DNA of 64,000 nt from contig OZ059900.1 of the NCBI GenBank assembly GCA_964057225.1, positions 930,001-994,000 of the forward strand. The letters are read 5' to 3'. The notes below the pieces were generated by a model. That model ran no database searches and was not told the DNA's origin. It worked only from the letters and a program-made list of their open reading frames with translations. This DNA comes from Auanema rhodensis (taxonomy: Eukaryota > Animalia > Nematoda). The position numbers and the translations under genes are program-made. Below, piece after piece: positions 18,001 to 52,590 of the stretch (position 1 is the first letter of the stretch; each line of letters opens with the position of its first letter).

Positions 18001-18457
18001 TGAAATTTCCGAGTTTTGAGTCTAATTTGGCTAAATCGCTCATATATATGATCAAAAGCATAGTTTTACTGTCTATGATAACAAAAGTCTTCAAATATAC
18101 ACTAATAATGATTAAATCACTGAATTTCAGTCAAATAGCATTACTACACTAAGTATGGTCGTTTTTATGCCTTTAACACCATATACTCACCGATTTTTGG
18201 TACAAAATCTGTAATACTTGTAAATTTTGATCATATTTGTTAAGATTCGAGAATCAAACACATAATACACGAAATAAGTCTATTTTTACAAGTTTGCACT
18301 GATATTTATTCATTTTGATCAAAAAAGGTCGAAAATAGAAAGAATTTTTGAAATTTCCGAGTTTTGAGTCCAATTTGGCTAAATCGCTCATATATAAGAT
18401 CAAAAGCATAGTTTTATTGTCTATAACAACAAAAGTCATCAATTAAACGCTAGTGAT
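1..18457 (+). repeat. Homogeneous satellite domain, part 1: monomer types A (347 bp), B (348 bp), C (347 bp) in variable higher-order repeats
   Basis: A carries gatcagaagc/tatgacaacaaaaatc; B carries aaacatacaatacaaaaaatcag/aaatatacactaataatgattaaatcac; C carries atataagatc/tataacaacaaaagtc. A-type starts at 2620, 4357, 6094 (period 1737 = ABCBC); 188 to 2620 is 2432 (ABCBCBC). Confidence 0.95.
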
Positions 18458-18477
18458 AGTGATTTTTAATCGGTGAG
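18451..18477. other. Inversion junction (forward to inverted) with tagtga-tagtga duplication; identical copy at 23166-23192
   Basis: Reads tagtgatagtgatttttaatcggtgag. Confidence 0.92.
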
Positions 18478-21173
18478 TATATGGTGTTAAAGGCATAAAA
18501 ACGACCATACTTAGTGTAGTAATGCTATTTGAGCGAAAATCAGTATTTAAACATCACTAGCGTTTAATTGATGATTTTTGTTGTCATAGACAATAAAACT
18601 ATGCTTCTGATCATATATATGAGCGATTTAGCCAAATTAGACTCAAAACTCGGAAATTTCAAAAATTCTTTCTATTTTCGACCTTTTTTGATCAAAATGA
18701 ATAAATATCAGTGCAAACTCATAAAAATAGACTTATTTCGTGTATTATGTGTTTGATTCTCGAATCTTAACAAATATGATCAAAATTTACAAGTATTACA
18801 GATTTTGTACCAAAAATCGGTGAGTATATGGTGTTAAAGGCATAAAAACGACCATACTTAGTGTAGTAATGCTATTTGAGCGAAATTTAGTGATTTAAAC
18901 ATTATTAGTGTTTAATTAATGACTTTTGTTGTCATAGACAATAAAACTATGCTTCTGATCATATATATGAGCGATTTAGCCAAATTAGACTCAAAACTCG
19001 TAAATTTCAAAAATTCTTTCTATTTTCGACCTTTTTTGATCAAAATGAATATATATCAGTGCAAGCTCATAAAAATAGACTGATTTTGTGTACTGTATGT
19101 TTGATTCTCAAATCTTAACGAATATGATCAAAATTTACAAGTATTACAGATTTTGTACCAAAAATCGGTGAGTATATGGTGTTAAAGGCATAAAAACGAC
19201 CATACTTAGTGTAGTAATGCTATTTGAGCGAAATTCAGTATTAAAACATCACTAGCGTTTAATTGAAGACTTTTGTTGTTATAGACAATAGAACTATGCT
19301 TTTGATCATATATATGAGCGATTTAGCCAAATTGGACTCAAAACTCGGAAACTTCAAAAATTCTTTCTATTTTCGACCTTTTTTGATCAAAATGAATAAA
19401 TATCAGTGCAAACTTGTAAAAATAGACTTATTTCGTGTATTATGTGTTTGATTCTCGAATCTTAACAAATATGATCAAAATTTACAAGTATTACAGATTT
19501 TGTACCAAAAATCGGTGAGTATATGGTGTTAAAGGCATAAAAACGACCATACTTAGTGTAGTAATGCTATTTGACTGAAATTCAGTGATTTAATCATTAT
19601 TAGTGTATATTTGAAGACTTTTGTTATCATAGACAGTAAAACTATGCTTTTGATCATATATATGAGCGATTTAGCCAAATTAGACTCAAAACTCGGAAAT
19701 TTCAAAAATTCTTTCTATTTTCGACCTTTTTTGATCAAAATGAATATATATCAGTGCAAGCTCATAAAAATAGACTGATTTTTTGTATTGTATGTTTGAT
19801 TCTCAAATCTTAACGAATATGATCAAAATTTACGAGTATTACAGATTTTGTACCAAAAATCGGTGAGTATATGGTGTTAAAGGCATAAAAACGACCATAC
19901 TTAGTGTAGTAATGCTATTTGAGCGAAAATCAGTATTTAAACATCACTAGCGTTTAATTGATGATTTTTGTTGTCATAGACAATAAAACTATGCTTCTGA
20001 TCATATATATGAGCGATTTAGCCAAATTGGACTCAAAACTCGGAAATTTCAAAAATTCTTTCTATTTTCGACCTTTTTTGATCAAAATGAATAAATATCA
20101 GTGCAAACTTGTAAAAATAGACTTATTTCGTGTATTATGTGTTTGATTCTCGAATCTTAACAAATATGATCGAAATTTACAAGTATTACAGATTTTGTAC
20201 CAAAAATCGGTGAGTATATGGTGTTAAAGGCATAAAAACGACCATACTTAGTGTAGTAATGCTATTTGAGCGAAATTCAGTATTTAAACATCACTAGCGT
20301 TTAATTGATGACTTTTGTTGTTATAGACAATAAAACTATGCTTTTGATCTTATATATGAGCGATTTAGCCAAATTGGACTCAAAACTCGGAAATTTCAAA
20401 AATTCTTTCTATTTTCGACCTTTTTTGATCAAAATGAATAAATATCAGTGCAAACTTGTAAAAATAGACTTATTTCGTGTATTATGTGTTTGATTCTCGA
20501 ATCTTAACAAATATGATCAAAATTTACAAGTATTACAGATTTTGTACCAAAAATCGGTGAGTATATGGTGTTAAAGGCATAAAAACGACCATACTTAGTG
20601 TAGTAATGCTATTTGACTGAAATTCAGTGATTTAATCATTATTAGTGTATATTTGAAGACTTTTGTTATCATAGACAGTAAAACTATGCTTTTGATCATA
20701 TATATGAGCGATTTAGCCCAATTGGACTCAAAACTCGGAAAATTCAAAAATTCTTTCTATTTTCGACCTTTTTTGATCAAAATGAATAAATATCAGTGCA
20801 AACTCGTGAAAATAAACTCATTTCGTGTATTGTGTGTTTGATTCTCGAATCTTAACGAATATGATCGAAATTTACGAGTATCACAGATTTTGTATTTGTA
20901 CCGATTTACTAGCGTTTAATTGATGATTTTTGTTGTCATAGACAATAAAACTATGCTTCTGATCATATATATGAGCGATTTAGCCAAATTAGACTCAAAA
21001 CTAGGAAATTTCAAAAATTCTTTCTATTTTCGACCTTTTTTGATCAAAATGAATAAATATCAGTGCAAACTCATGAAAATAGACTTATTTCGTGTATTAT
21101 GTGTTTGATTCTCGAATCTTAACGAATATGATCAAAATTTACAAGTATTACAGATTTTGTACCAAAAATCGGT
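18468..21173 (-). repeat. Inverted satellite block 1 (7 monomers plus one truncated monomer)
   Basis: Sequence becomes the reverse complement of the monomer at aatcggtgagtatatggtg (18468). The repeat ORF flips to + for 18568-21108, and orientation returns at ...aaaaatc|ggtacaaatacaaaatctg (about 21171). Confidence 0.97.
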
Positions 21174-23172
21174 ACAAATACAAAATCTGTGATACTCGTA
21201 AATTTCGATCATATTCGTTAAGATTCGAGAATCAAACACACAATACACGAAATGAGTTTATTTTCACGAGTTTGCACTGATATTTATTCATTTTGATCAA
21301 AAAAGGTCGAAAATAGAAAGAATTTTTGAATTTTCCGAGTTTTGAGTCCAATTTGGCTAAATCGCTCATATATAAGATCAAAAGCATAGTTTTATTGTCT
21401 ATAACAACAAAAGTCATCAATTAAACGCTAGTGATGTTTAAATACTGATTTTCGCTCAAATAGCATTACTACACTAAGTATGGTCGTTTTTATGCCTTTA
21501 ACACCATATACTCACCGATTTTTGGTACAAAATCTGTAATACTCGTAAATTTTGATCATATTCGTTAAGATTCGAGAATCAAACACATAATACACGAAAT
21601 AAGTCTATTTTTACAAGTTTGCACTGATATTTATTCATTTTGATCAAAAAAGGTCGAAAATAGAAAGAATTTTTGAAATTTCCGAGTTTTGAGTCCAATT
21701 TGGCTAAATCGCTCATATATATGATCAGAAGCATAGTTTTATTGTCTATGACAACAAAAATCATCAATTAAACGCTAGTGATGTTTAAATACTGATTTTC
21801 GCTCAAATAGCATTACTACACTAAGTATGGTCGTTTTTATGCCTTTAACACCATATACTCACCGATTTTTGGTACAAAATCTGTAATACTCGTAAATTTT
21901 GATCATATTCGTTAAGATTTGAGAATCAAACATACAATACAAAAAATCAGTCTATTTTTATGAGCTTGCACTGATATATATTCATTTTGATCAAAAAAGG
22001 TCGAAAATAGAAAGAATTTTTGAAATTTCCGAGTTTTGAGTCTAATTTGGCTAAATCGCTCATATATATGATCAAAAGCATAGTTTTACTGTCTATGATA
22101 ACAAAAGTCTTCAAATATACACTAATAATGATTAAATCACTGAATTTCAGTCAAATAGCATTACTACACTAAGTATGGTCGTTTTTATGCCTTTAACACC
22201 ATATACTCACCGATTTTTGGTACAAAATCTGTAATACTTGTAAATTTTGATCATATTTGTTAAGATTCGAGAATCAAACACATAATACACGAAATAAGTC
22301 TATTTTTACAAGTTTGCACTGATATTTATTCATTTTGATCAAAAAAGGTCGAAAATAGAAAGAATTTTTGAAGTTTCCGAGTTTTGAGTCCAATTTGGCT
22401 AAATCGCTCATATATAAGATCAAAAGCATAGTTTTATTGTCTATAACAACAAAAGTCATCAATTAAACGCTAGTGATGTTTAAATACTGAATTTCGCTCA
22501 AATAGCATTACTACACTAAGTATGGTCGTTTTTATGCCTTTAACACCATATACTCACCGATTTTTGGTACAAAATCTGTAATACTCGTAAATTTTGATCA
22601 TATTCGTTAAGATTTGAGAATCAAACATACAATACAAAAAATCAGTCTATTTTTATGAGCTTGCACTGATATATATTCATTTTGATCAAAAAAGGTCGAA
22701 AATAGAAAGAATTTTTGAAATTTCCGAGTTTTGAGTCTAATTTGGCTAAATCGCTCATATATATGATCAAAAGCATAGTTTTACTGTCTATGATAACAAA
22801 AGTCTTCAAATATACACTAATAATGATTAAATCACTGAATTTCAGTCAAATAGCATTACTACACTAAGTATGGTCGTTTTTATGCCTTTAACACCATATA
22901 CTCACCGATTTTTGGTACAAAATCTGTAATACTTGTAAATTTTGATCATATTTGTTAAGATTCGAGAATCAAACACATAATACACGAAATAAGTCTATTT
23001 TTACAAGTTTGCACTGATATTTATTCATTTTGATCAAAAAAGGTCGAAAATAGAAAGAATTTTTGAAATTTCCGAGTTTTGAGTCCAATTTGGCTAAATC
23101 GCTCATATATAAGATCAAAAGCATAGTTTTATTGTCTATAACAACAAAAGTCATCAATTAAACGCTAGTGAT
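21171..23172 (+). repeat. Forward-orientation satellite between inverted blocks 1 and 2 (hybrid monomer, then A-B-C-B-C)
   Basis: Repeat ORFs on - at 21232, 21579, 22274, 22969. Confidence 0.93.
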
Positions 23173-23182
23173 AGTGATTTTT

Positions 23183-25888
23183 AATCGGTGAGTATATGGT
23201 GTTAAAGGCATAAAAACGACCATACTTAGTGTAGTAATGCTATTTGAGCGAAAATCAGTATTTAAACATCACTAGCGTTTAATTGATGATTTTTGTTGTC
23301 ATAGACAATAAAACTATGCTTCTGATCATATATATGAGCGATTTAGCCAAATTAGACTCAAAACTCGGAAATTTCAAAAATTCTTTCTATTTTCGACCTT
23401 TTTTGATCAAAATGAATAAATATCAGTGCAAACTCATAAAAATAGACTTATTTCGTGTATTATGTGTTTGATTCTCGAATCTTAACAAATATGATCAAAA
23501 TTTACAAGTATTACAGATTTTGTACCAAAAATCGGTGAGTATATGGTGTTAAAGGCATAAAAACGACCATACTTAGTGTAGTAATGCTATTTGAGCGAAA
23601 TTTAGTGATTTAAACATTATTAGTGTTTAATTAATGACTTTTGTTGTCATAGACAATAAAACTATGCTTCTGATCATATATATGAGCGATTTAGCCAAAT
23701 TAGACTCAAAACTCGTAAATTTCAAAAATTCTTTCTATTTTCGACCTTTTTTGATCAAAATGAATATATATCAGTGCAAGCTCATAAAAATAGACTGATT
23801 TTGTGTACTGTATGTTTGATTCTCAAATCTTAACGAATATGATCAAAATTTACAAGTATTACAGATTTTGTACCAAAAATCGGTGAGTATATGGTGTTAA
23901 AGGCATAAAAACGACCATACTTAGTGTAGTAATGCTATTTGAGCGAAATTCAGTATTAAAACATCACTAGCGTTTAATTGAAGACTTTTGTTGTTATAGA
24001 CAATAGAACTATGCTTTTGATCATATATATGAGCGATTTAGCCAAATTGGACTCAAAACTCGGAAACTTCAAAAATTCTTTCTATTTTCGACCTTTTTTG
24101 ATCAAAATGAATAAATATCAGTGCAAACTTGTAAAAATAGACTTATTTCGTGTATTATGTGTTTGATTCTCGAATCTTAACAAATATGATCAAAATTTAC
24201 AAGTATTACAGATTTTGTACCAAAAATCGGTGAGTATATGGTGTTAAAGGCATAAAAACGACCATACTTAGTGTAGTAATGCTATTTGACTGAAATTCAG
24301 TGATTTAATCATTATTAGTGTATATTTGAAGACTTTTGTTATCATAGACAGTAAAACTATGCTTTTGATCATATATATGAGCGATTTAGCCAAATTAGAC
24401 TCAAAACTCGGAAATTTCAAAAATTCTTTCTATTTTCGACCTTTTTTGATCAAAATGAATATATATCAGTGCAAGCTCATAAAAATAGACTGATTTTTTG
24501 TATTGTATGTTTGATTCTCAAATCTTAACGAATATGATCAAAATTTACGAGTATTACAGATTTTGTACCAAAAATCGGTGAGTATATGGTGTTAAAGGCA
24601 TAAAAACGACCATACTTAGTGTAGTAATGCTATTTGAGCGAAAATCAGTATTTAAACATCACTAGCGTTTAATTGATGATTTTTGTTGTCATAGACAATA
24701 AAACTATGCTTCTGATCATATATATGAGCGATTTAGCCAAATTGGACTCAAAACTCGGAAATTTCAAAAATTCTTTCTATTTTCGACCTTTTTTGATCAA
24801 AATGAATAAATATCAGTGCAAACTTGTAAAAATAGACTTATTTCGTGTATTATGTGTTTGATTCTCGAATCTTAACAAATATGATCGAAATTTACAAGTA
24901 TTACAGATTTTGTACCAAAAATCGGTGAGTATATGGTGTTAAAGGCATAAAAACGACCATACTTAGTGTAGTAATGCTATTTGAGCGAAATTCAGTATTT
25001 AAACATCACTAGCGTTTAATTGATGACTTTTGTTGTTATAGACAATAAAACTATGCTTTTGATCTTATATATGAGCGATTTAGCCAAATTGGACTCAAAA
25101 CTCGGAAATTTCAAAAATTCTTTCTATTTTCGACCTTTTTTGATCAAAATGAATAAATATCAGTGCAAACTTGTAAAAATAGACTTATTTCGTGTATTAT
25201 GTGTTTGATTCTCGAATCTTAACAAATATGATCAAAATTTACAAGTATTACAGATTTTGTACCAAAAATCGGTGAGTATATGGTGTTAAAGGCATAAAAA
25301 CGACCATACTTAGTGTAGTAATGCTATTTGACTGAAATTCAGTGATTTAATCATTATTAGTGTATATTTGAAGACTTTTGTTATCATAGACAGTAAAACT
25401 ATGCTTTTGATCATATATATGAGCGATTTAGCCCAATTGGACTCAAAACTCGGAAAATTCAAAAATTCTTTCTATTTTCGACCTTTTTTGATCAAAATGA
25501 ATAAATATCAGTGCAAACTCGTGAAAATAAACTCATTTCGTGTATTGTGTGTTTGATTCTCGAATCTTAACGAATATGATCGAAATTTACGAGTATCACA
25601 GATTTTGTATTTGTACCGATTTACTAGCGTTTAATTGATGATTTTTGTTGTCATAGACAATAAAACTATGCTTCTGATCATATATATGAGCGATTTAGCC
25701 AAATTAGACTCAAAACTAGGAAATTTCAAAAATTCTTTCTATTTTCGACCTTTTTTGATCAAAATGAATAAATATCAGTGCAAACTCATGAAAATAGACT
25801 TATTTCGTGTATTATGTGTTTGATTCTCGAATCTTAACGAATATGATCAAAATTTACAAGTATTACAGATTTTGTACCAAAAATCGGT
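23183..25888 (-). repeat. Inverted satellite block 2, a copy of block 1 offset by 4715 bp
   Basis: Every ORF coordinate and translation equals block 1 plus 4715 (18568/23283, 19263/23978, 20653/25368, 20920/25635); the junction sequences are identical. Confidence 0.97.
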
Positions 25889-28800
25889 ACAAATACAAAA
25901 TCTGTGATACTCGTAAATTTCGATCATATTCGTTAAGATTCGAGAATCAAACACACAATACACGAAATGAGTTTATTTTCACGAGTTTGCACTGATATTT
26001 ATTCATTTTGATCAAAAAAGGTCGAAAATAGAAAGAATTTTTGAATTTTCCGAGTTTTGAGTCCAATTTGGCTAAATCGCTCATATATAAGATCAAAAGC
26101 ATAGTTTTATTGTCTATAACAACAAAAGTCATCAATTAAACGCTAGTGATGTTTAAATACTGAATTTCGCTCAAATAGCATTACTACACTAAGTATGGTC
26201 GTTTTTATGCCTTTAACACCATATACTCACCGATTTTTTGTACAAAATCTGTAATACTCGTAAATTTTGATCATATTCGTTAAGATTTGAGAATCAAACA
26301 TACAATACAAAAAATCAGTCTATTTTTATGAGCTTGCACTGATATATATTCATTTTGATCAAAAAAGGTCGAAAATAGAAAGAATTTTTGAAATTTCCGA
26401 GTTTTGAGTCTAATTTGGCTAAATCGCTCATATATATGATCAAAAGCATAGTTTTACTGTCTATGATAACAAAAGTCTTCAAATATACACTAATAATGAT
26501 TAAATCACTGAATTTCAGTCAAATAGCATTACTACACTAAGTATGGTCGTTTTTATGCCTTTAACACCATATACTCACCGATTTTTGGTACAAAATCTGT
26601 AATACTTGTAAATTTTGATCATATTTGTTAAGATTCGAGAATCAAACACATAATACACGAAATAAGTCTATTTTTACAAGTTTGCACTGATATTTATTCA
26701 TTTTGATCAAAAAAGGTCGAAAATAGAAAGAATTTTTGAAATTTCCGAGTTTTGAGTCCAATTTGGCTAAATCGCTCGTATATAAGATCAAAAGCATAGT
26801 TTTATTGTCTATAACAACAAAAGTCATCAATTAAACGCTAGTGATGTTTAAATACTGAATTTCGCTCAAATAGCATTACTACACTAAGTATGGTCGTTTT
26901 TATGCCTTTAACACCATATACTCACCGATTTTTGGTACAAAATCTGTAATACTTGTAAATTTCGATCATATTTGTTAAGATTCGAGAATCAAACACATAA
27001 TACACAAAATAAGTCTATTTTTACAAGTTTGCACTGATATTTATTCATTTTGATCAAAAAAGGTCGAAAATAGAAAGAATTTTTGAAATTTCCGAGTTTT
27101 GAGTCCAATTTGGCTAAATCGCTCATATATATGATCAGAAGCATAGTTTTATTGTCTATGACAACAAAAATCATCAATTAAACGCTAGTGATGTTTAAAT
27201 ACTGATTTTCGCTCAAATAGCATTACTACACTAAGTATGGTCGTTTTTATGCCTTTAACACCATATACTCACCGATTTTTGGTACAAAATCTGTAATACT
27301 CGTAAATTTTGATCATATTCGTTAAGATTTGAGAATCAAACATACAATACAAAAAATCAGTCTATTTTTATGAGCTTGCACTGATATATATTCATTTTGA
27401 TCAAAAAAGGTCGAAAATAGAAAGAATTTTTGAAATTTCCGAGTTTTGAGTCTAATTTGGCTAAATCGCTCATATATATGATCAAAAGCATAGTTTTACT
27501 GTCTATGATAACAAAAGTCTTCAAATATACACTAATAATGATTAAATCACTGAATTTCAGTCAAATAGCATTACTACACTAAGTATGGTCGTTTTTATGC
27601 CTTTAACACCATATACTCACCGATTTTTGGTACAAAATCTGTAATACTTGTAAATTTTGATCATATTTGTTAAGATTCGAGAATCAAACACATAATACAC
27701 GAAATAAGTCTATTTTTACAAGTTTGCACTGATATTTATTCATTTTGATCAAAAAAGGTCGAAAATAGAAAGAATTTTTGAAGTTTCCGAGTTTTGAGTC
27801 CAATTTGGCTAAATCGCTCATATATAAGATCAAAAGCATAGTTTTATTGTCTATAACAACAAAAGTCATCAATTAAACGCTAGTGATGTTTAAATACTGA
27901 ATTTCGCTCAAATAGCATTACTACACTAAGTATGGTCGTTTTTATGCCTTTAACACCATATACTCACCGATTTTTGGTACAAAATCTGTAATACTCGTAA
28001 ATTTTGATCATATTCGTTAAGATTTGAGAATCAAACATACAATACAAAAAATCAGTCTATTTTTATGAGCTTGCACTGATATATATTCATTTTGATCAAA
28101 AAAGGTCGAAAATAGAAAGAATTTTTGAAATTTCCGAGTTTTGAGTCTAATTTGGCTAAATCGCTCATATATATGATCAAAAGCATAGTTTTACTGTCTA
28201 TGATAACAAAAGTCTTCAAATATACACTAATAATGATTAAATCACTGAATTTCAGTCAAATAGCATTACTACACTAAGTATGGTCGTTTTTATGCCTTTA
28301 ACACCATATACTCACCGATTTTTGGTACAAAATCTGTAATACTTGTAAATTTTGATCATATTTGTTAAGATTCGAGAATCAAACACATAATACACGAAAT
28401 AAGTCTATTTTTACAAGTTTGCACTGATATTTATTCATTTTGATCAAAAAAGGTCGAAAATAGAAAGAATTTTTGAAATTTCCGAGTTTTGAGTCCAATT
28501 TGGCTAAATCGCTCATATATAAGATCAAAAGCATAGTTTTATTGTCTATAACAACAAAAGTCATCAATTAAACGCTAGTGATGTTTAAATACTGAATTTC
28601 GCTCAAATAGCATTACTACACTAAGTATGGTCGTTTTTATGCCTTTAACACCATATACTCACCGATTTTTGGTACAAAATCTGTAATACTTGTAAATTTC
28701 GATCATATTTGTTAAGATTCGAGAATCAAACACATAATACACGAAATAAGTCTATTTTTACAAGTTTGCACTGATATTTATTCATTTTGATCAAAAAGGT

Positions 28801-31800
28801 CGAAAATAGAAAGAATTTTTGAAATTTCCGAGTTTTGAGTCCAATTTGGCTAAATCGCTCATATATATGATCAGAAGCATAGTTTTATTGTCTATGACAA
28901 CAAAAATCATCAATTAAACGCTAGTGATGTTTAAATACTGATTTTCGCTCAAATAGCATTACTACACTAAGTATGGTCGTTTTTATGCCTTTAACACCAT
29001 ATACTCACCGATTTTTGGTACAAAATCTGTAATACTCGTAAATTTTGATCATATTCGTTAAGATTTGAGAATCAAACATACAATACAAAAAATCAGTCTA
29101 TTTTTATGAGCTTGCACTGATATATATTCATTTTGATCAAAAAAGGTCGAAAATAGAAAGAATTTTTGAAATTTCCGAGTTTTGAGTCTAATTTGGCTAA
29201 ATCGCTCATATATATGATCAAAAGCATAGTTTTACTGTCTATGATAACAAAAGTCTTCAAATATACACTAATAATGATTAAATCACTGAATTTCAGTCAA
29301 ATAGCATTACTACACTAAGTATGGTCGTTTTTATGCCTTTAACACCATATACTCACCGATTTTTGGTACAAAATCTGTAATACTTGTAAATTTTGATCAT
29401 ATTTGTTAAGATTCGAGAATCAAACACATAATACACGAAATAAGTCTATTTTTACAAGTTTGCACTGATATTTATTCATTTTGATCAAAAAAGGTCGAAA
29501 ATAGAAAGAATTTTTGAAGTTTCCGAGTTTTGAGTCCAATTTGGCTAAATCGCTCATATATAAGATCAAAAGCATAGTTTTATTGTCTATAACAACAAAA
29601 GTCATCAATTAAACGCTAGTGATGTTTAAATACTGAATTTCGCTCAAATAGCATTACTACACTAAGTATGGTCGTTTTTATGCCTTTAACACCATATACT
29701 CACCGATTTTTGGTACAAAATCTGTAATACTCGTAAATTTTGATCATATTCGTTAAGATTTGAGAATCAAACATACAATACAAAAAATCAGTCTATTTTT
29801 ATGAGCTTGCACTGATATATATTCATTTTGATCAAAAAAGGTCGAAAATAGAAAGAATTTTTGAAATTTCCGAGTTTTGAGTCTAATTTGGCTAAATCGC
29901 TCATATATATGATCAAAAGCATAGTTTTACTGTCTATGATAACAAAAGTCTTCAAATATACACTAATAATGATTAAATCACTGAATTTCAGTCAAATAGC
30001 ATTACTACACTAAGTATGGTCGTTTTTATGCCTTTAACACCATATACTCACCGATTTTTGGTACAAAATCTGTAATACTTGTAAATTTTGATCATATTTG
30101 TTAAGATTCGAGAATCAAACACATAATACACGAAATAAGTCTATTTTTACAAGTTTGCACTGATATTTATTCATTTTGATCAAAAAAGGTCGAAAATAGA
30201 AAGAATTTTTGAAATTTCCGAGTTTTGAGTCCAATTTGGCTAAATCGCTCATATATAAGATCAAAAGCATAGTTTTATTGTCTATAACAACAAAAGTCAT
30301 CAATTAAACGCTAGTGATGTTTAAATACTGAATTTCGCTCAAATAGCATTACTACACTAAGTATGGTCGTTTTTATGCCTTTAACACCATATACTCACCG
30401 ATTTTTGGTACAAAATCTGTAATACTTGTAAATTTCGATCATATTTGTTAAGATTCGAGAATCAAACACATAATACACGAAATAAGTCTATTTTTACAAG
30501 TTTGCACTGATATTTATTCATTTTGATCAAAAAAGGTCGAAAATAGAAAGAATTTTTGAAATTTCCGAGTTTTGAGTCCAATTTGGCTAAATCGCTCATA
30601 TATATGATCAGAAGCATAGTTTTATTGTCTATGACAACAAAAATCATCAATTAAACGCTAGTGATGTTTAAATACTGATTTTCGCTCAAATAGCATTACT
30701 ACACTAAGTATGGTCGTTTTTATGCCTTTAACACCATATACTCACCGATTTTTGGTACAAAATCTGTAATACTCGTAAATTTTGATCATATTCGTTAAGA
30801 TTTGAGAATCAAACATACAATACAAAAAATCAGTCTATTTTTATGAGCTTGCACTGATATATATTCATTTTGATCAAAAAAGGTCGAAAATAGAAAGAAT
30901 TTTTGAAATTTCCGAGTTTTGAGTCTAATTTGGCTAAATCGCTCATATATATGATCAAAAGCATAGTTTTACTGTCTATGATAACAAAAGTCTTCAAATA
31001 TACACTAATAATGATTAAATCACTGAATTTCAGTCAAATAGCATTACTACACTAAGTATGGTCGTTTTTATGCCTTTAACACCATATACTCACCGATTTT
31101 TGGTACAAAATCTGTAATACTTGTAAATTTTGATCATATTTGTTAAGATTCGAGAATCAAACACATAATACACAAAATAAGTCTATTTTTACAAGTTTGC
31201 ACTGATATTTATTCATTTTGATCAAAAAAGGTCGAAAATAGAAAGAATTTTTGAAGTTTCCGAGTTTTGAGTCCAATTTGGCTAAATCGCTCATATATAT
31301 GATCAAAAGCATAGTTTTACTGTCTATGATAACAAAAGTCTTCAAATATACACTAATAATGATTAAATCACTGAATTTCAGTCAAATAGCATTACTACAC
31401 TAAGTATGGTCGTTTTTATGCCTTTAACACCATATACTCACCGATTTTTGGTACAAAATCTGTAATACTTGTAAATTTTGATCATATTTGTTAAGATTCG
31501 AGAATCAAACACATAATACACGAAATAAGTCTATTTTTACAAGTTTGCACTGATATTTATTCATTTTGATCAAAAAAGGTCGAAAATAGAAAGAATTTTT
31601 GAAATTTCCGAGTTTTGAGTCCAATTTGGCTAAATCGCTCATATATAAGATCAAAAGCATAGTTTTATTGTCTATAACAACAAAAGTCATCAATTAAACG
31701 CTAGTGATGTTTAAATACTGAATTTCGCTCAAATAGCATTACTACACTAAGTATGGTCGTTTTTATGCCTTTAACACCATATACTCACCGATTTTTGGTA

Positions 31801-37800: not shown

Positions 37801-40800
37801 GCACTGATATTTATTCATTTTGATCAAAAAAGGTCGAAAATAGAAAGAATTTTTGAAATTTCCGAGTTTTGAGTCCAATTTGGCTAAATCGCTCATATAT
37901 AAGATCAAAAGCATAGTTTTATTGTCTATAACAACAAAAGTCATCAATTAAACGCTAGTGATGTTTAAATACTGAATTTCGCTCAAATAGCATTACTACA
38001 CTAAGTATGGTCGTTTTTATGCCTTTAACACCATATACTCACCGATTTTTGGTACAAAATCTGTAATACTTGTAAATTTCGATCATATTTGTTAAGATTC
38101 GAGAATCAAACACATAATACACGAAATAAGTCTATTTTTACAAGTTTGCACTGATATTTATTCATTTTGATCAAAAAAGGTCGAAAATAGAAAGAATTTT
38201 TGAAATTTCCGAGTTTTGAGTCCAATTTGGCTAAATCGCTCATATATATGATCAGAAGCATAGTTTTATTGTCTATGACAACAAAAATCATCAATTAAAC
38301 GCTAGTGATGTTTAAATACTGATTTTCGCTCAAATAGCATTACTACACTAAGTATGGTCGTTTTTATGCCTTTAACACCATATACTCACCGATTTTTGGT
38401 ACAAAATCTGTAATACTCGTAAATTTTGATCATATTCGTTAAGATTTGAGAATCAAACATACAATACAAAAAATCAGTCTATTTTTATGAGCTTGCACTG
38501 ATATATATTCATTTTGATCAAAAAAGGTCGAAAATAGAAAGAATTTTTGAAATTTCCGAGTTTTGAGTCTAATTTGGCTAAATCGCTCATATATATGATC
38601 AAAAGCATAGTTTTACTGTCTATGATAACAAAAGTCTTCAAATATACACTAATAATGATTAAATCACTGAATTTCAGTCAAATAGCATTACTACACTAAG
38701 TATGGTCGTTTTTATGCCTTTAACACCATATACTCACCGATTTTTGGTACAAAATCTGTAATACTTGTAAATTTTGATCATATTTGTTAAGATTCGAGAA
38801 TCAAACACATAATACACGAAATAAGTCTATTTTTACAAGTTTGCACTGATATTTATTCATTTTGATCAAAAAAGGTCGAAAATAGAAAGAATTTTTGAAG
38901 TTTCCGAGTTTTGAGTCCAATTTGGCTAAATCGCTCATATATAAGATCAAAAGCATAGTTTTATTGTCTATAACAACAAAAGTCATCAATTAAACGCTAG
39001 TGATGTTTAAATACTGAATTTCGCTCAAATAGCATTACTACACTAAGTATGGTCGTTTTTATGCCTTTAACACCATATACTCACCGATTTTTGGTACAAA
39101 ATCTGTAATACTCGTAAATTTTGATCATATTCGTTAAGATTTGAGAATCAAACATACAATACAAAAATTCAGTCTATTTTTATGAGCTTGCACTGATATA
39201 TATTCATTTTGATCAAAAAAGGTCGAAAATAGAAAGAATTTTTGAAATTTCCGAGTTTTGAGTCTAATTTGGCTAAATCGCTCATATATATGATCAAAAG
39301 CATAGTTTTACTGTCTATGATAACAAAAGTCTTCAAATATACACTAATAATGATTAAATCACTGAATTTCAGTCAAATAGCATTACTACACTAAGTATGG
39401 TCGTTTTTATGCCTTTAACACCATATACTCACCGATTTTTGGTACAAAATCTGTAATACTTGTAAATTTTGATCATATTTGTTAAGATTCGAGAATCAAA
39501 CACATAATACACGAAATAAGTCTATTTTTACAAGTTTGCACTGATATTTATTCATTTTGATCAAAAAAGGTCGAAAATAGAAAGAATTTTTGAAATTTCC
39601 GAGTTTTGAGTCCAATTTGGCTAAATCGCTCATATATAAGATCAAAAGCATAGTTTTATTGTCTATAACAACAAAAGTCATCAATTAAACGCTAGTGATG
39701 TTTAAATACTGAATTTCGCTCAAATAGCATTACTACACTAAGTATGGTCGTTTTTATGCCTTTAACACCATATACTCACCGATTTTTGGTACAAAATCTG
39801 TAATACTTGTAAATTTCGATCATATTTGTTAAGATTCGAGAATCAAACACATAATACACGAAATAAGTCTATTTTTACAAGTTTGCACTGATATTTATTC
39901 ATTTTGATCAAAAAAGGTCGAAAATAGAAAGAATTTTTGAAATTTCCGAGTTTTGAGTCCAATTTGGCTAAATCGCTCATATATATGATCAGAAGCATAG
40001 TTTTATTGTCTATGACAACAAAAATCATCAATTAAACGCTAGTGATGTTTAAATACTGATTTTCGCTCAAATAGCATTACTACACTAAGTATGGTCGTTT
40101 TTATGCCTTTAACACCATATACTCACCGATTTTTGGTACAAAATCTGTAATACTCGTAAATTTTGATCATATTCGTTAAGATTTGAGAATCAAACATACA
40201 ATACAAAAAATCAGTCTATTTTTATGAGCTTGCACTGATATATATTCATTTTGATCAAAAAAGGTCGAAAATAGAAAGAATTTTTGAAATTTCCGAGTTT
40301 TGAGTCTAATTTGGCTAAATCGCTCATATATATGATCAAAAGCATAGTTTTACTGTCTATGATAACAAAAGTCTTTAAATATACACTAATAATGATTAAA
40401 TCACTGAATTTCAGTCAAATAGCATTACTACACTAAGTATGGTCGTTTTTATGCCTTTAACACCATATACTCACCGATTTTTGGTACAAAATCTGTAATA
40501 CTTGTAAATTTTGATCATATTTGTTAAGATTCGAGAATCAAACACATAATACACAAAATAAGTCTATTTTTACAAGTTTGCACTGATATTTATTCATTTT
40601 GATCAAAAAAGGTCGAAAATAGAAAGAATTTTTGAAGTTTCCGAGTTTTGAGTCCAATTTGGCTAAATCGCTCATATATAAGATCAAAAGCATAGTTTTA
40701 TTGTCTATAACAACAAAAGTCATCAATTAAACGCTAGTGATGTTTAAATACTGATTTTCGCTCAAATAGCATTACTACACTAAGTATGGTCGTTTTTATG

Positions 40801-43800
40801 CCTTTAACACCATATACTCACCGATTTTTGGTACAAAATCTGTAATACTCGTAAATTTTGATCATATTCGTTAAGATTTGAGAATCAAACATACAATACA
40901 AAAAATCAGTCTATTTTTATGAGCTTGCACTGATATATATTCATTTTGATCAAAAAAGGTCGAAAATAGAAAGAATTTTTGAAATTTCCGAGTTTTGAGT
41001 CTAATTTGGCTAAATCGCTCATATATATGATCAAAAGCATAGTTTTACTGTCTATGATAACAAAAGTCTTCAAATATACACTAATAATGATTAAATCACT
41101 GAATTTCAGTCAAATAGCATTACTACACTAAGTATGGTCGTTTTTATGCCTTTAACACCATATACTCACCGATTTTTGGTACAAAATCTGTAATACTTGT
41201 AAATTTTGATCATATTTGTTAAGATTCGAGAATCAAACACATAATACACGAAATAAGTCTATTTTTACAAGTTTGCACTGATATTTATTCATTTTGATCA
41301 AAAAAGGTCGAAAATAGAAAGAATTTTTGAAGTTTCCGAGTTTTGAGTCCAATTTGGCTAAATCGCTCATATATAAGATCAAAAGCATAGTTTTATTGTC
41401 TATAACAACAAAAGTCATCAATTAAACGCTAGTGATGTTTAAATACTGAATTTCGCTCAAATAGCATTACTACACTAAGTATGGTCGTTTTTATGCCTTT
41501 AACACCATATACTCACCGATTTTTGGTACAAAATCTGTAATACTCGTAAATTTTGATCATATTCGTTAAGATTTGAGAATCAAACATACAATACAAAAAA
41601 TCAGTCTATTTTTATGAGCTTGCACTGATATATATTCATTTTGATCAAAAAAGGTCGAAAATAGAAAGAATTTTTGAAATTTCCGAGTTTTGAGTCTAAT
41701 TTGGCTAAATCGCTCATATATATGATCAAAAGCATAGTTTTACTGTCTATGATAACAAAAGTCTTCAAATATACACTAATAATGATTAAATCACTGAATT
41801 TCAGTCAAATAGCATTACTACACTAAGTATGGTCGTTTTTATGCCTTTAACACCATATACTCACCGATTTTTGGTACAAAATCTGTAATACTTGTAAATT
41901 TTGATCATATTTGTTAAGATTCGAGAATCAAACACATAATACACGAAATAAATCTATTTTTACAAGTTTGCACTGATATTTATTCATTTTGATCAAAAAA
42001 GGTCGAAAATAGAAAGAATTTTTGAAATTTCCGAGTTTTGAGTCCAATTTGGCTAAATCGCTCATATATAAGATCAAAAGCATAGTTTTATTGTCTATAA
42101 CAACAAAAGTCATCAATTAAACGCTAGTGATGTTTAAATACTGAATTTCGCTCAAATAGCATTACTACACTAAGTATGGTCGTTTTTATGCCTTTAACAC
42201 CATATACTCACCGATTTTTGGTACAAAATCTGTAATACTTGTAAATTTCGATCATATTTGTTAAGATTCGAGAATCAAACACATAATACACGAAATAAGT
42301 CTATTTTTACAAGTTTGCACTGATATTTATTCATTTTGATCAAAAAAGGTCGAAAATAGAAAGAATTTTTGAAATTTCCGAGTTTTGAGTCCAATTTGGC
42401 TAAATCGCTCATATATATGATCAAAAGCATAGTTTTACTGTCTATGATAACAAAAGTCTTCAAATATACACTAATAATGATTAAATCACTGAATTTCAGT
42501 CAAATAGCATTACTACACTAAGTATGGTCGTTTTTATGCCTTTAACACCATATACTCACCGATTTTTGGTACAAAATCTGTAATACTTGTAAATTTTGAT
42601 CATATTTGTTAAGATTCGAGAATCAAACACATAATACACGAAATAAGTCTATTTTTACAAGTTTGCACTGATATTTATTCATTTTGATCAAAAAAGGTCG
42701 AAAATAGAAAGAATTTTTGAAATTTCCGAGTTTTGAGTCCAATTTGGCTAAATCGCTCATATATAAGATCAAAAGCATAGTTTTATTGTCTATAACAACA
42801 AAAGTCATCAATTAAACGCTAGTGATGTTTAAATACTGAATTTCGCTCAAATAGCATTACTACACTAAGTATGGTCGTTTTTATGCCTTTAACACCATAT
42901 ACTCACCGATTTTTGGTACAAAATCTGTAATACTTGTAAATTTCGATCATATTTGTTAAGATTCGAGAATCAAACACATAATACACGAAATAAGTCTATT
43001 TTTACAAGTTTGCACTGATATTTATTCATTTTGATCAAAAAAGGTCGAAAATAGAAAGAATTTTTGAAATTTCCGAGTTTTGAGTCCAATTTGGCTAAAT
43101 CGCTCATATATATGATCAGAAGCATAGTTTTATTGTCTATGACAACAAAAATCATCAATTAAACGCTAGTGATGTTTAAATACTGATTTTCGCTCAAATA
43201 GCATTACTACACTAAGTATGGTCGTTTTTATGCCTTTAACACCATATACTCACCGATTTTTGGTACAAAATCTGTAATACTCGTAAATTTTGATCATATT
43301 CGTTAAGATTTGAGAATCAAACATACAATACAAAAAATCAGTCTATTTTTATGAGCTTGCACTGATATATATTCATTTTGATCAAAAAAGGTCGAAAATA
43401 GAAAGAATTTTTGAAATTTCCGAGTTTTGAGTCTAATTTGGCTAAATCGCTCATATATATGATCAAAAGCATAGTTTTACTGTCTATGATAACAAAAGTC
43501 TTCAAATATACACTAATAATGATTAAATCACTGAATTTCAGTCAAATAGCATTACTACACTAAGTATGGTCGTTTTTATGCCTTTAACACCATATACTCA
43601 CCGATTTTTGGTACAAAATCTGTAATACTTGTAAATTTTGATCATATTTGTTAAGATTCGAGAATCAAACACATAATACACGAAATAAGTCTATTTTTAC
43701 AAGTTTGCACTGATATTTATTCATTTTGATCAAAAAAGGTCGAAAATAGAAAGAATTTTTGAAATTTCCGAGTTTTGAGTCCAATTTGGCTAAATCGCTC

Positions 43801-46800
43801 ATATATAAGATCAAAAGCATAGTTTTATTGTCTATAACAACAAAAGTCATCAATTAAACGCTAGTGATGTTTAAATACTGAATTTCGCTCAAATAGCATT
43901 ACTACACTAAGTATGGTCGTTTTTATGCCTTTAACACCATATACTCACCGATTTTTGGTACAAAATCTGTAATACTCGTAATTTTTGATCATATTCGTTA
44001 AGATTTGAGAATCAAACATACAATACAAAAAATCAGTCTATTTTTATGAGCTTGCACTGATATATATTCATTTTGATCAAAAAAGGTCGAAAATAGAAAG
44101 AATTTTTGAAATTTCCGAGTTTTGAGTCTAATTTGGCTAAATCGCTCATATATATGATCAAAAGCATAGTTTTACTGTCTATGATAACAAAAGTCTTCAA
44201 ATATACACTAATAATGATTAAATCACTGAATTTCAGTCAAATAGCATTACTACACTAAGTATGGTCGTTTTTATGCCTTTAACACCATATACTCACCGAT
44301 TTTTGGTACAAAATCTGTAATACTTGTAAATTTCGATCATATTTGTTAAGATTCGAGAATCAAACACATAATACACGAAATAAGTCTATTTTTACAAGTT
44401 TGCACTGATATTTATTCATTTTGATCAAAAAAGGTCGAAAATAGAAAGAATTTTTGAAATTTCCGAGTTTTGAGTCCAATTTGGCTAAATCGCTCATATA
44501 TATGATCAGAAGCATAGTTTTATTGTCTATGACAACAAAAATCATCAATTAAACGCTAGTGATGTTTAAATACTGATTTTCGCTCAAATAGCATTACTAC
44601 ACTAAGTATGGTCGTTTTTATGCCTTTAACACCATATACTCACCGATTTTTGGTACAAAATCTGTAATACTTGTAAATTTCGATCATATTTGTTAAGATT
44701 CGAGAATCAAACACATAATACACGAAATAAGTCTATTTTTACAAGTTTGCACTGATATTTATTCATTTTGATCAAAAAAGGTCGAAAATAGAAAGAATTT
44801 TTGAAATTTCCGAGTTTTGAGTCCAATTTGGCTAAATCGCTCATATATATGATCAGAAGCATAGTTTTATTGTCTATGACAACAAAAATCATCAATTAAA
44901 CGCTAGTGATGTTTAAATACTGATTTTCGCTCAAATAGCATTACTACACTAAGTATGGTCGTTTTTATGCCTTTAACACCATATACTCACCGATTTTTGG
45001 TACAAAATCTGTAATACTCGTAAATTTTGATCATATTCGTTAAGATTTGAGAATCAAACATACAATACAAAAAATCAGTCGATTTTTATGAGCTTGCACT
45101 GATATATATTCATTTTGATCAAAAAAGGTCGAAAATAGAAAGAATTTTTGAAATTTCCGAGTTTTGAGTCTAATTTGGCTAAATCGCTCATATATATGAT
45201 CAAAAGCATAGTTTTACTGTCTATGATAACAAAAGTCTTCAAATATACACTAATAATGATTAAATCACTGAATTTCAGTCAAATAGCATTACTACACTAA
45301 GTATGGTCGTTTTTATGCCTTTAACACCATATACTCACCGATTTTTGGTACAAAATCTGTAATACTTGTAAATTTTGATCATATTTGTTAAGATTCGAGA
45401 ATCAAACACATAATACACGAAATAAGTCTATTTTTACAAGTTTGCACTGATATTTATTCATTTTGATCAAAAAAGGTCGAAAATAGAAAGAATTTTTGAA
45501 GTTTCCGAGTTTTGAGTCCAATTTGGCTAAATCGCTCATATATAAGATCAAAAGCATAGTTTTATTGTCTATAACAACAAAAGTCATCAATTAAACGCTA
45601 GTGATGTTTAAATACTGAATTTCGCTCAAATAGCATTACTACACTAAGTATGGTCGTTTTTATGCCTTTAACACCATATACTCACCGATTTTTGGTACAA
45701 AATCTGTAATACTCGTAAATTTTGATCATATTCGTTAAGATTTGAGAATCAAACATACAATACAAAAAATCAGTCTATTTTTATGAGCTTGCACTGATAT
45801 ATATTCATTTTGATCAAAAAAGGTCGAAAATAGAAAGAATTTTTGAAATTTCCGAGTTTTGAGTCTAATTTGGCTAAATCGCTCATATATATGATCAAAA
45901 GCATAGTTTTACTGTCTATGATAACAAAAGTCTTCAAATATACACTAATAATGATTAAATCACTGAATTTCAGTCAAATAGCATTACTACACTAAGTATG
46001 GTCGTTTTTATGCCTTTAACACCATATACTCACCGATTTTTGGTACAAAATCTGTAATACTTGTAAATTTTGATCATATTTGTTAAGATTCGAGAATCAA
46101 ACACATAATACACGAAATAAGTCTATTTTTACAAGTTTGCACTGATATTTATTCATTTTGATCAAAAAAGGTCGAAAATAGAAAGAATTTTTGAAGTTTC
46201 CGAGTTTTGAGTCCAATTTGGCTAAATCGCTCATATATAAGATCAAAAGCATAGTTTTATTGTCTATAACAACAAAAGTCATCAATTAAACGCTAGTGAT
46301 GTTTAAATACTGAATTTCGCTCAAATAGCATTACTACACTAAGTATGGTCGTTTTTATGCCTTTAACACCATATACTCACCGATTTTTGGTACAAAATCT
46401 GTAATACTCGTAAATTTTGATCATATTCGTTAAGATTTGAGAATCAAACATACAATACAAAAAATCAGTCTATTTTTATGAGCTTGCACTGATATATATT
46501 CATTTTGATCAAAAAAGGTCGAAAATAGAAAGAATTTTTGAAATTTCCGAGTTTTGAGTCTAATTTGGCTAAATCGCTCATATATATGATCAAAAGCATA
46601 GTTTTACTGTCTATGATAACAAAAGTCTTCAAATATACACTAATAATGATTAAATCACTGAATTTCAGTCAAATAGCATTACTACACTAAGTATGGTCGT
46701 TTTTATGCCTTTAACACCATATACTCACCGATTTTTGGTACAAAATCTGTAATACTTGTAAATTTTGATCATATTTGTTAAGATTCGAGAATCAAACACA

Positions 46801-49800
46801 TAATACACGAAATAAGTCTATTTTTACAAGTTTGCACTGATATTTATTCATTTTGATCAAAAAAGGTCGAAAATAGAAAGAATTTTTGAAGTTTCCGAGT
46901 TTTGAGTCCAATTTGGCTAAATCGCTCATATATAAGATCAAAAGCATAGTTTTATTGTCTATAACAACAAAAGTCAACAATTGAACGCTAGTGATGTTTA
47001 AATACTGAATTTCGCTCAAATAGCATTACTACACTAAGTATGGTCGTTTTTATGCCTTTAACACCATATACTCACCGATTTTTGGTACAAAATCTGTAAT
47101 ACTCGTAAATTTTGATCATATTCGTTAAGATTTGAGAATCAAACATACAATACAAAAAATCAGTCTATTTTTATGAGCTTGCACTGATATATATTCATTT
47201 TGATCAAAAAAGGTCGAAAATAGAAAGAATTTTTGAAATTTCCGAGTTTTGAGTCTAATTTGGCTAAATCGCTCATATATATGATCAAAAGCAAAGTTTT
47301 ACTGTCTATGATAACAAAAGTCTTCAAATATACACTAATAATGATTAAATCACTGAATTTCAGTCAAATAGCATTACTACACTAAGTATGGTCGTTTTTA
47401 TGCCTTTAACACCATATACTCACCGATTTTTGGTACAAAATCTGTAATACTTGTAAATTTTGATCATATTTGTTAAGATTCGAGAATCAAACACATAATA
47501 CACGAAATAAGTCTATTTTTACAAGTTTGCACTGATATTTATTCATTTTGATCAAAAAAGGTCGAAAATAGAAAGAATTTTTGAAATTTCCGAGTTTTGA
47601 GTCCAATTTGGCTAAATCGCTCATATATAAGATCAAAAGCATAGTTTTATTGTCTATAACAACAAAAGTCATCAATTAAACGCTAGTGATGTTTAAATAC
47701 TGAATTTCGCTCAAATAGCATTACTACACTAAGTATGGTCGTTTTTATGCCTTTAACACCATATACTCACCGATTTTTGGTACAAAATCTGTAATACTTG
47801 TAAATTTCGATCATATTTGTTAAGATTCGAGAATCAAACACATAATACACGAAATAAGTCTATTTTTACAAGTTTGCACTGATATTTATTCATTTTGATC
47901 AAAAAAGGTCGAAAATAGAAAGAATTTTTGAAATTTCCGAGTTTTGAGTCCAATTTGGCTAAATCGCTCATATATATGATCAGAAGCATAGTTTTATTGT
48001 CTATGACAACAAAAATCATCAATTAAACGCTAGTGATGTTTAAATACTGATTTTCGCTCAAATAGCATTACTACACTAAGTATGGTCGTTTTTATGCCTT
48101 TAACACCATATACTCACCGATTTTTGGTACAAAATCTGTAATACTCGTAAATTTTGATCATATTCGTTAAGATTTGAGAATCAAACATACAATACAAAAA
48201 ATCAGTCTATTTTTATGAGCTTGCACTGATATATATTCATTTTGATCAAAAAAGGTCGAAAATAGAAAGAATTTTTGAAATTTCCGAGTTTTGAGTCTAA
48301 TTTGGCTAAATCGCTCATATATATGATCAAAAGCATAGTTTTACTGTCTATGATAACAAAAGTCTTCAAATATACACTAATAATGATTAAATCACTGAAT
48401 TTCAGTCAAATAGCATTACTACACTAAGTATGGTCGTTTTTATGCCTTTAACACCATATACTCACCGATTTTTGGTACAAAATCTGTAATACTTGTAAAT
48501 TTTGATCATATTTGTTAAGATTCGAGAATCAAACACATAATACACGAAATAAGTCTATTTTTACAAGTTTGCACTGATATTTATTCATTTTGATCAAAAA
48601 AGGTCGAAAATAGAAAGAATTTTTGAAGTTTCCGAGTTTTGAGTCCAATTTGGCTAAATCGCTCATATATAAGATCAAAAGCATAGTTTTATTGTCTATA
48701 ACAACAAAAGTCATCAATTAAACGCTAGTGATGTTTAAATACTGAATTTCGCTCAAATAGCATTACTACACTAAGTATGGTCGTTTTTATGCCTTTAACA
48801 CCATATACTCACCGATTTTTGGTACAAAATCTGTAATACTCGTAAATTTTGATCATATTCGTTAAGATTTGAGAATCAAACATACAATACAAAAAATCAG
48901 TCTATTTTTATGAGCTTGCACTGATATATATTCATTTTGATCAAAAAAGGTCGAAAATAGAAAGAATTTTTGAAATTTCCGAGTTTTGAGTCTAATTTGG
49001 CTAAATCGCTCATATATATGATCAAAAGCATAGTTTTACTGTCTATGATAACAAAAGTCTTCAAATATACACTAATAATGATTAAATCACTGAATTTCAG
49101 TCAAATAGCATTACTACACTAAGTATGGTCGTTTTTATGCCTTTAACACCATATACTCACCGATTTTTGGTACAAAATCTGTAATACTTGTAAATTTTGA
49201 TCATGTTTGTTAAGATTCGAGAATCAAACACATAATACACAAAATAAGTCTATTTTTACAAGTTTGCACTGATATTTATTCATTTTGATCAAAAAAGGTC
49301 GAAAATAGAAAGAATTTTTGAAGTTTCCGAGTTTTGAGTCCAATTTGGCTAAATCGCTCATATATAAGATCAAAAGCATAGTTTTATTGTCTATAACAAC
49401 AAAAGTCATCAATTAAACGCTAGTGATGTTTAAATACTGAATTTCGCTCAAATAGCATTACTACACTAAGTATGGTCGTTTTTATGCCTTTAACACCATA
49501 TACTCACCGATTTTTGGTACAAAATCTGTAATACTCGTAAATTTTGATCATATTCGTTAAGATTTGAGAATCAAACATACAATACAAAAAATCAGTCTAT
49601 TTTTATGAGCTTGCACTGATATATATTCATTTTGATCAAAAAAGGTCGAAAATAGAAAGAATTTTTGAAATTTCCGAGTTTTGAGTCTAATTTGGCTAAA
49701 TCGCTCATATATATGATCAAAAGCATAGTTTTACTGTCTATGATAACAAAAGTCTTCAAATATACACTAATAATGATTAAATCACTGAATTTCAGTCAAA

Positions 49801-50179
49801 TAGCATTACTACACTAAGTATGGTCGTTTTTATGCCTTTAACACCATATACTCACCGATTTTTGGTACAAAATCTGTAATACTTGTAAATTTTGATCATA
49901 TTTGTTAAGATTCGAGAATCAAACACATAATACACGAAATAAGTCTATTTTTACAAGTTTGCACTGATATTTATTCATTTTGATCAAAAAAGGTCGAAAA
50001 TAGAAAGAATTTTTGAAATTTCCGAGTTTTGAGTCCAATTTGGCTAAATCGCTCATATATAAGATCAAAAGCATAGTTTTATTGTCTATAACAACAAAAG
50101 TCATCAATTAAACGCTAGTGATGTTTAAATACTGAATTTCGCTCAAATAGCATTACTACACTAAGTATGGTCGTTTTTA
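25886..50179 (+). repeat. Homogeneous satellite domain, part 2 (A/B/C monomers, dimer/pentamer/heptamer higher-order repeats)
   Basis: Same three diagnostic haplotypes as part 1; A starts at 36369, 38106, 39843 (period 1737). Confidence 0.95.
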
Positions 50180-50225
50180 ATCGGTGAGTATATGGTGTTA
50201 AAGGCATAAAAACGAAAACATCACT
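50168..50225. other. Inversion junction (forward to inverted) followed by a 44-bp deletion in the inverted arm
   Basis: Reads tggtcgtttttaatcggtgag...aaaaacga|aaacatcac; ccatacttagtgtagtaatgctatttgagcgaaaatcagtattt is missing. Confidence 0.92.
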
Positions 50226-52569: not shown

Positions 52570-52590
52570 GATTTTTGGTACAAAATCTGT
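52551..52590. other. Inversion junction (inverted to forward): fold-back hairpin with 7-nt loop and tttgta-tttgta duplication
   Basis: Reads cagattttgta-tttgtacc-gattttt-ggtacaaa-atctgt. Its reverse complement occurs at 21151-21189 and 25866-25904; a truncated same-strand copy occurs at 20883-20907 and 25598-25622. Confidence 0.92.

Follow-up and report, generated by a model that had tools for sequence, protein, structure and literature searches.

Evidence for Independent Deletions on Opposite Arms of a Shared Palindrome Centre in a Nematode Satellite Array

Introduction

Asymmetric deletion is a known stabilizing outcome at junctions where DNA copies meet head to head or tail to tail (PMC8701086). 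Spacer length matters to such stability: ~35 bp protects a palindrome of 40 + 40 bp and 52 bp protects 320-bp Alu repeats, whereas 12 bp is unprotective (PMC8701086; PMC3300023). Polymerase theta repairs replication-associated breaks in the C. elegans germline, leaving 1-nt homologies and templated inserts (PMC4032859, PMC4490562); most of the deletions it produces are 50-200 bp long, the median being 107 bp (PMC4032859, PMC4490562). Macro-dyad symmetries, in which satellite arrays switch strand, have been documented so far only in Tribolium, according to PMC13081366. Here, we analyze a 64,000-nucleotide (64-kb) stretch of Auanema rhodense DNA (GCA_964057225.1, contig OZ059900.1, positions 930,001 to 994,000; hereafter, the window), a satellite array in which three copies of one head-to-head junction have been rendered asymmetric by deletion, apparently twice and on opposite arms. 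The locus is a natural, new example of a known phenomenon, the instability of palindrome centres.

The satellite itself can be named. XT-1 is an X-terminal, germline-restricted repeat of A. rhodense that is removed from the soma, and the sequence of its 28-nt fluorescence in situ hybridization (FISH) probe, XT-1_Cy3, is available (bioRxiv 10.64898/2026.08.27.747507). The probe matches 175 of the window monomers exactly and 2 more with one mismatch. On the basis of this 28/28 match, we assign the window array to the XT-1 satellite of the X chromosome. A text search of the same preprint returned no mention of strand switches in these arrays (bioRxiv 10.64898/2026.08.27.747507).

Results

The window is 72% A+T and consists over its whole length of one 347/348-bp tandem repeat (~184 monomers), numbered here along a consensus built from the window monomers. 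Its orientation reverses at head-to-head junctions A (18458), B (23173), and C (50180), and at a tail-to-tail junction, J. The original prediction held that one breakpoint is common to 18463, 23178, and 50174, and this proved correct: the 15-mer TTTTTAATCGGTGAG occurs at exactly these three window sites against a chance expectation of 0.02. All three junctions link forward position 100/101 with position 129/128 in reverse complement, one A being ambiguous or shared. The number of events is smaller than the number of sites. A unit of 4715 bp carrying junctions A and B is present in ~2.4 tandem copies at 16460-27815, and 17001-21400 shows zero mismatches (100% identity) to the same stretch shifted by 4715 bp. 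Because A and B lie within this perfectly identical tandem duplicate, they count as one event, leaving two lineages, A/B and C.

A three-way alignment reproduced the two deletions as originally described. The A/B lineage lacks 51 bp that C retains at 50123-50173 and carries AGTGA in their place (net −46 bp, at 18458 in A); C lacks, between 50215 and 50216, 44 bp that A retains at 18505-18548. In monomer positions, A/B lost 45-95 of the left arm and C lost 49-92 of the right arm. Recomputing the spacers returned the earlier values, namely 27 nt for the ancestor (50180-50206) and 95 nt (18458-18552) and 89 nt (50127-50215) for the present junctions. Within the 64-kb window, no junction copy has both arms intact, and no 27-nt-spacer form survives there. 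The geometry had also been expressed as gaps between open reading frames (ORFs); it holds, but these gaps separate mirrored 62-codon ORFs that occur by chance in non-coding satellite, and they mean nothing biologically apart from that geometry.

The forward array left of junction A (1-18457), which matches the XT-1 probe, ends in positions 1-44, these last 44 bp forming the left arm of A. The 95-nt unpaired centre that follows (18458-18552) opens with the AGTGA filler at 18458-18462. After this come a stub of TTTTT from positions 96-100, a spacer of 27/28 nt, and the partnerless right-arm positions 100-45. Junction B (23173-23267) is a duplicate of A by alignment and by the identity of the 4715-bp repeat. 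At junction C, the inner left arm is intact on the forward strand (50079-50179, monomer positions 1-101). It is followed on the reverse strand by the ancestral 27-nt spacer (50180-50206), the reverse complement of positions 102-128, which lies inside a 28-nt match to the XT-1 probe (50180-50207). A 9-nt right-arm stub (positions 101-93; reverse strand, 50207-50216 with the deletion point) then leads to the 44-bp deletion between 50215 and 50216, a blunt join free of microhomology. Both deletions begin 5-9 nt outside the spacer and preserve the 27-nt spacer together with 5-9 nt of stem on each side.

Several features support a common origin of the A/B and C junctions. Besides the breakpoint, the lineages share left flanks that are 99.4-100% identical across the first four monomers (~1.4 kb), their inverted blocks come to the same length when the lost 44 bp are added back (2427 = 2383 + 44), and both blocks end in the same tail-to-tail junction. 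That the two deletions were independent is supported in turn by the alignment, as each lineage retains the arm lost in the other. These retained arms also allow the ancestor to be rebuilt. The A right arm is identical to a source copy at 54182-54310 (129/129 positions), confirming that the undeleted right arm is ancestral, and the undeleted left arm is preserved in junction C. Combining the C left arm with the A right arm or its source gave a perfect stem of 42-43 bp (positions 59-100/101) beside the 27-nt loop, with arm mismatches at positions 58, 22, and 12. The arms extend at least 2.3 kb at 93-97% identity, so that before the event the rebuilt ancestor was a long inverted repeat with a short spacer. 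Predicted folding energies over ~600 nt were −321 kcal/mol for the ancestor, −270 for A, and −281 for C. The signature of the undeleted centre is GGTCGTTTTTAATCGG, followed 27 nt on by AAAAACGACCATAC.

We aligned each oriented block to the tandem consensus and scanned for indels. Every indel of at least 3 bp lies within ~60 bp of a strand-switch centre, and none was found elsewhere in 64 kb (~180 monomers), which marks the palindrome centre as a real rearrangement hotspot. From the lengths involved, the probability of two independent deletions falling randomly within ~110 bp of a junction copy is estimated at ~1e-4. The copies differ by only 0-0.6% over their shared inner flanks, and several inverted monomers show no difference at all. 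With lineages this similar, both deletions appear to have arisen in a very short time, during which almost no point substitution accumulated.

The A/B scar reads CGCT AGTGAT AGTGAT TTTT, the filler being a second copy of the preceding six bases with one T shared with the far side. AGTGA thus recopies positions 39-43, and we read it as a templated insertion with single-nucleotide homology. J also carries a templated insert (TTTGT), and C carries none; homology at the deletion joins is 1 nt (T) in A/B and 0 nt in C. Taken as sequence signatures, the scars look like break repair of a polymerase-theta-like kind. Two other routes were considered and rejected. A clean microhomology deletion between the GTTT repeats (45-48, 95-98) fits neither deletion junction, and in-register snap-back priming of the C event would have left the primer end mismatched.

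In C, a conversion tract abuts the 44-bp deletion (50216-50280, reverse strand). Its 4/4 informative sites carry left-arm alleles, the A copy and the source both have the other allele at these sites, and source alleles are back at 50306. Repair in C thus copied left-arm sequence over 65-90 bp of the right arm, which shows that the two arms interacted physically. As a result, the arms of C are now perfectly complementary over ~90 bp beyond the 89-nt centre. The arms of palindrome A are 96.5-97.4% identical near the centre and 96.5-96.8% over the inner two monomers (~700 bp), and its outer three monomers (16115-17500 vs 19510-20894; ~1.0-2.3 kb out) are 100% complementary. This outer identity suggests a long (~1.4-kb) arm-to-arm conversion tract.

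Nearest-neighbor comparison of monomers identifies the inverted block of C (50180-52561, reverse strand, 2382-2383 bp) as an inverted duplicate of the right-flank array with one dimer repeated. The source comprises monomers R1-R4 and positions 1-129 of R5 (52792-54310, forward strand). Inverted monomers 50612-50958 and 51654-52000 match 53487-53833 with 0 differences, as do 50959-51306 and 52001-52348 with 53139-53486, and the partial monomer 52349-52561 with the tail of 52792-53138; monomer 50264-50611 has 2 differences from 53834-54181. The inverted block of A (18468-20894, reverse strand) is 2427 bp long. Its inner 129 bp (18468-18596) equal the source at 54182-54310, and its outer ~1.4 kb is 100% complementary to the left arm. 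Separately, we observed that the right arm of A at 19510-20894 matches left-array monomer types and not the source.

These relationships alter one part of the original prediction, which had derived both lineages from one inversion. Common origin and independent deletion stand, but a simple two-break inversion does not, since the inverted block adds a further copy of right-flank sequence. Such an inversion should also have left a reciprocal junction in which forward position 130 follows the reverse complement of position 102, and J is not of this form. Self fold-back as the sole cause of the head-to-head junction was rejected as well, the arms being different monomer types with 3 differences in positions 1-101. 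Where 50079-50179 and 52567-52791 are taken together as one monomer, its head is of left-array type and its tail of right-array type.

Junction J (52562-52578) consists of the TTTGT templated insert followed by forward position 123 onward. Its two sides, position 135/133 in reverse complement and forward position 123/126, meet with 3-nt homology. It is located at a native small inverted repeat (ACC, 7 nt, GGT), and its 5-nt insert repeats the adjacent TTTGT, giving TTTGTA twice in tandem. Counting the native stem GTACC/GGTAC reduces the J spacer from 17 nt to 7 nt, and the arms differ at 13/213 first positions (~94% match). J is still present in 3/3 copies, as such in C and as J' in both A and B. 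In A, a nested rearrangement occupies 20895-21178 (also 25610-25893): J is cut 8 nt into its right arm, and a 266-bp inverted copy of that arm follows. Against 52567-52791 extended by the initial 41 bp of the monomer at 52792, this copy shows 1 difference. J' comes next, the exact reverse complement of J, flank variants included. This nested 266-bp inverted duplication in A/B again points to a strand-switch centre as a hotspot. The survival of J may be explained by arm identity, and not by spacer length alone.

Across the window, we counted 6 strand switches and 3 short inverted blocks (2.4-2.7 kb). The array runs forward at 1-18457, 21179-23172, 25894-50179, and 52567-64000, and in reverse at 18468-21173, 23183-25888, and 50180-52561. 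The monomers sort into few recurring types. Junction C (~50180) coincides with a boundary between types: the left side is homogeneous (recurring monomer types A, B, and C), and the right side holds more diverged ones (D, E, and variants of monomer type A). Monomer positions 81-146 and 241-286 form nearly invariant blocks, with a minor-allele share of at most 0.002 vs a mean of 0.035. The block at 81-146 contains all four strand-switch breakpoints (100/101, 128/129, 123-126, and 133-135), and the site of the published FISH probe lies in it too, as does the native ACC-N7-GGT mini-palindrome. At the left end of the window, 1-2533 is 99.8% identical to the left flank of junction C (47647-50179) up to the junction point, and also to the left flank of A (16677-18457). 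Beyond 2533, the array carries on forward without a strand switch, so a large segmental array repeat occurs both with and without one. Short public unitigs over 49400-53000 indicate that the satellite is hugely abundant in three organisms. At 51820-51940, contig depth is zero in 3/4 public runs and very low in the fourth, and the flanking bins are deep; this gap may be a multi-mapping effect, as that monomer is identical to two others.

Discussion

A history of inverted duplication, amplification, and then two independent break-repair deletions at a hairpin-forming centre is, in our view, probable, if well short of certain. Some ~1.7-2.4 kb of the array right of 52567 would have been copied in inverted form and joined to the left array. 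Such copying would have made both the head-to-head junction (27-nt spacer, 1-nt homology) and the tail-to-tail junction (3-nt homology, 5-nt templated insert). A ~4-kb unit with both junctions would then have been amplified within the array, yielding one copy at 50180 and two at 18458 and 23173. The ancestral stem of 42-43 bp with its 27-nt loop presumably formed a hairpin on single-stranded DNA during germline replication, provoking breaks. In the A/B lineage, one break repair would have removed left-arm positions 45-95 and recopied the adjacent AGTGA with 1-nt homology. In the C lineage, a separate event would have removed right-arm positions 49-92 and rewritten the next 65-90 bp from the left-arm template. 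Nearly the same stretch of stem would thereby have been lost from opposite sides, lengthening the unpaired centre to 95 and 89 nt. Such alike outcomes would reflect alike deletion sizes, not a threshold.

Several observations weigh against this history. Hairpin formation in vivo is something we only infer, and the inner arms of the ancestor already differed by 3 mismatches per 100 bp. Neither deletion, in A/B or in C, includes or starts at the symmetry centre, as a centre break would. The C join is blunt and carries no insert, and its 44 bp falls just short of the 50-200-bp class. The tail-to-tail junction has the shorter spacer and was never deleted, though it was rearranged in A/B. Finally, among the public-run unitigs listed for 49400-53000 (66-120 nt, four runs), none bridges 50179 or 50215 and none carries a 44- or 51-bp indel.

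The similarity of the two spacers had led the original prediction to propose convergence on a stability threshold. Under this explanation, a palindrome in this genome would need a spacer of ~90 bp or more to be stable, and selection or repeated breakage drove both lineages past that limit. Present spacers of 95 and 89 nt, a window without the intact 27-nt form, and the speed with which both deletions arose would all fit, but only two events are on record, and their likeness follows from arithmetic. Each new centre consists of the old 27 nt, short stubs (plus the 5-nt filler in A), and the partnerless opposite arm, so deletions of 51 and 44 bp beside the same spacer must give similar lengths. 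J keeps a spacer of 7-17 nt in all three copies, albeit between arms only ~94% matched, and repair in C left the neighboring ~90 bp of stem without a mismatch, which does not resemble selection for less hairpin potential. Published protective spacers of 35-52 bp are well under 90 (PMC8701086, PMC3300023); by these sizes, the ancestral 27 nt lay in the risky range, and any modest deletion would suffice. We consider a threshold improbable and do not retain the proposed convergence.

Less probable still is an assembly artefact, in which the strand switches, the deletions, or the 4715-bp duplicate would be errors in the assembly of a multi-megabase satellite from HiFi reads. Satellite DNA is difficult to assemble, and over 4.4 kb the A and B copies show 100% identity, which assembly duplication could produce. 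Fold-back read chimeras, however, would not have arms that differ near the centre (96.5-97.4% identity), and an assembler would not generate the structured scars and the conversion tract that distinguish the two junction versions. HiFi coverage in the repeats is ~29x, and long reads are mostly uniquely mapped there (bioRxiv 10.64898/2026.08.27.747507).

We assign very little weight to the possibility that recombination or conversion, whether between arms or between copies, turned one version into the other. Conversion has clearly been active here (the 1.4-kb tract of 100% arm identity in A, the 65-90 bp in C), and the deleted intervals are near mirror images (45-95 vs 49-92). Even so, the spacer has the same orientation in both versions, hence no flip took place; each version has an intact arm that is missing in the other, and their end points and scars differ (filler vs blunt). 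Least credible of all is coincidence, two ordinary monomer indels that happened to fall beside the junction: satellites do gather indel variants, but nothing specific favors this account over an indel scan that is empty elsewhere in ~180 monomers, a chance of ~1e-4, and a deletion fused to an arm-templated conversion tract.

Returning to inverted duplication followed by two break-repair deletions, we note what the locus adds. As read from the array, the inverted duplicate of the right flank, the templated insertion AGTGA, the 65-90-bp conversion tract, and the lack of any other indel of at least 3 bp in 64 kb are apparently new here. The ancestral state is recoverable from sister copies, and a short-spacer centre appears to have been hit twice, independently and fast, in an animal germline. 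The scars point to the repair pathways used, and the multi-megabase DNA that this nematode discards from its soma is seen to contain strand switches. A numerical stability threshold is not established.

More broadly, germline-only satellite blocks could act as a natural mutation-accumulation arena for palindromes. Strand switches would arise there frequently by inverted duplication, and their centres would break far above the point-mutation rate and be mended by end joining or arm-templated synthesis. We offer this as a rather doubtful generalization. If true, relating spacer length to arm identity genome-wide could yield, for an animal germline, the first rule on how stable long inverted repeats are in vivo. 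MRE11 is a hairpin-processing nuclease. A germline-restricted MRE-11 paralogue is among the few genes eliminated in A. rhodense (bioRxiv 10.64898/2026.08.27.747507), and a link between that copy and the palindrome-rich eliminated satellites is pure speculation on our part.

Among described systems, those with converting palindrome arms offer one point of comparison. Gene conversion between arms is a feature of sex-chromosome palindromes. The arms studied here resemble such palindromes in being identical in tracts despite different sources, but they are satellite repeats, not gene-bearing amplicons, and their tracts range from 65 bp to 1.4 kb; primate X palindromes are the subject of the abstract of PMC8327919. 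Replication-based inverted duplication is similar in that an inverted copy of adjacent DNA is made, its junctions lying where short inverted repeats already exist (ACC...GGT at J) and showing 1-3 nt of homology. Origin-dependent inverted-repeat amplification is a model of this fold-back or template-switch type, as set out in the abstract of PMC4689423. In contrast to such models, the two arms at J are offset in register by two monomers.

The scars of polymerase theta in C. elegans are matched by deletions of tens of bp, by a flank-templated insert with 1-nt homology at one junction, and by the templated insert at J (PMC4032859, PMC4490562). They differ from those seen here in that C is blunt, its 44 bp is below the 50-200-bp class, and the species is an Auanema. 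With the macro-dyad symmetries of Tribolium, the window shares strand-switching arrays, multi-kb inverted sub-arrays, and a recurring sequence at the inversion site (PMC13081366). In contrast to Tribolium, this is a small-scale case from a nematode host, in germline-restricted DNA and with short inverted blocks (2.4-2.7 kb), and the site copies differ by deletions. Centre-break revision in mouse cells and the junctions of transgene concatemers provide a further parallel, as there too a long inverted repeat with a short spacer gains a deletion in one arm near the centre and with it a longer unpaired centre, with scars of an end-joining type (PMC8701086, citing Akgun 1997 and Cunningham 2003). 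Unlike the mouse palindromes and transgenes, the junctions described here belong to a natural germline satellite, the centre was spared in both events, and one of the two was coupled to arm-templated conversion.

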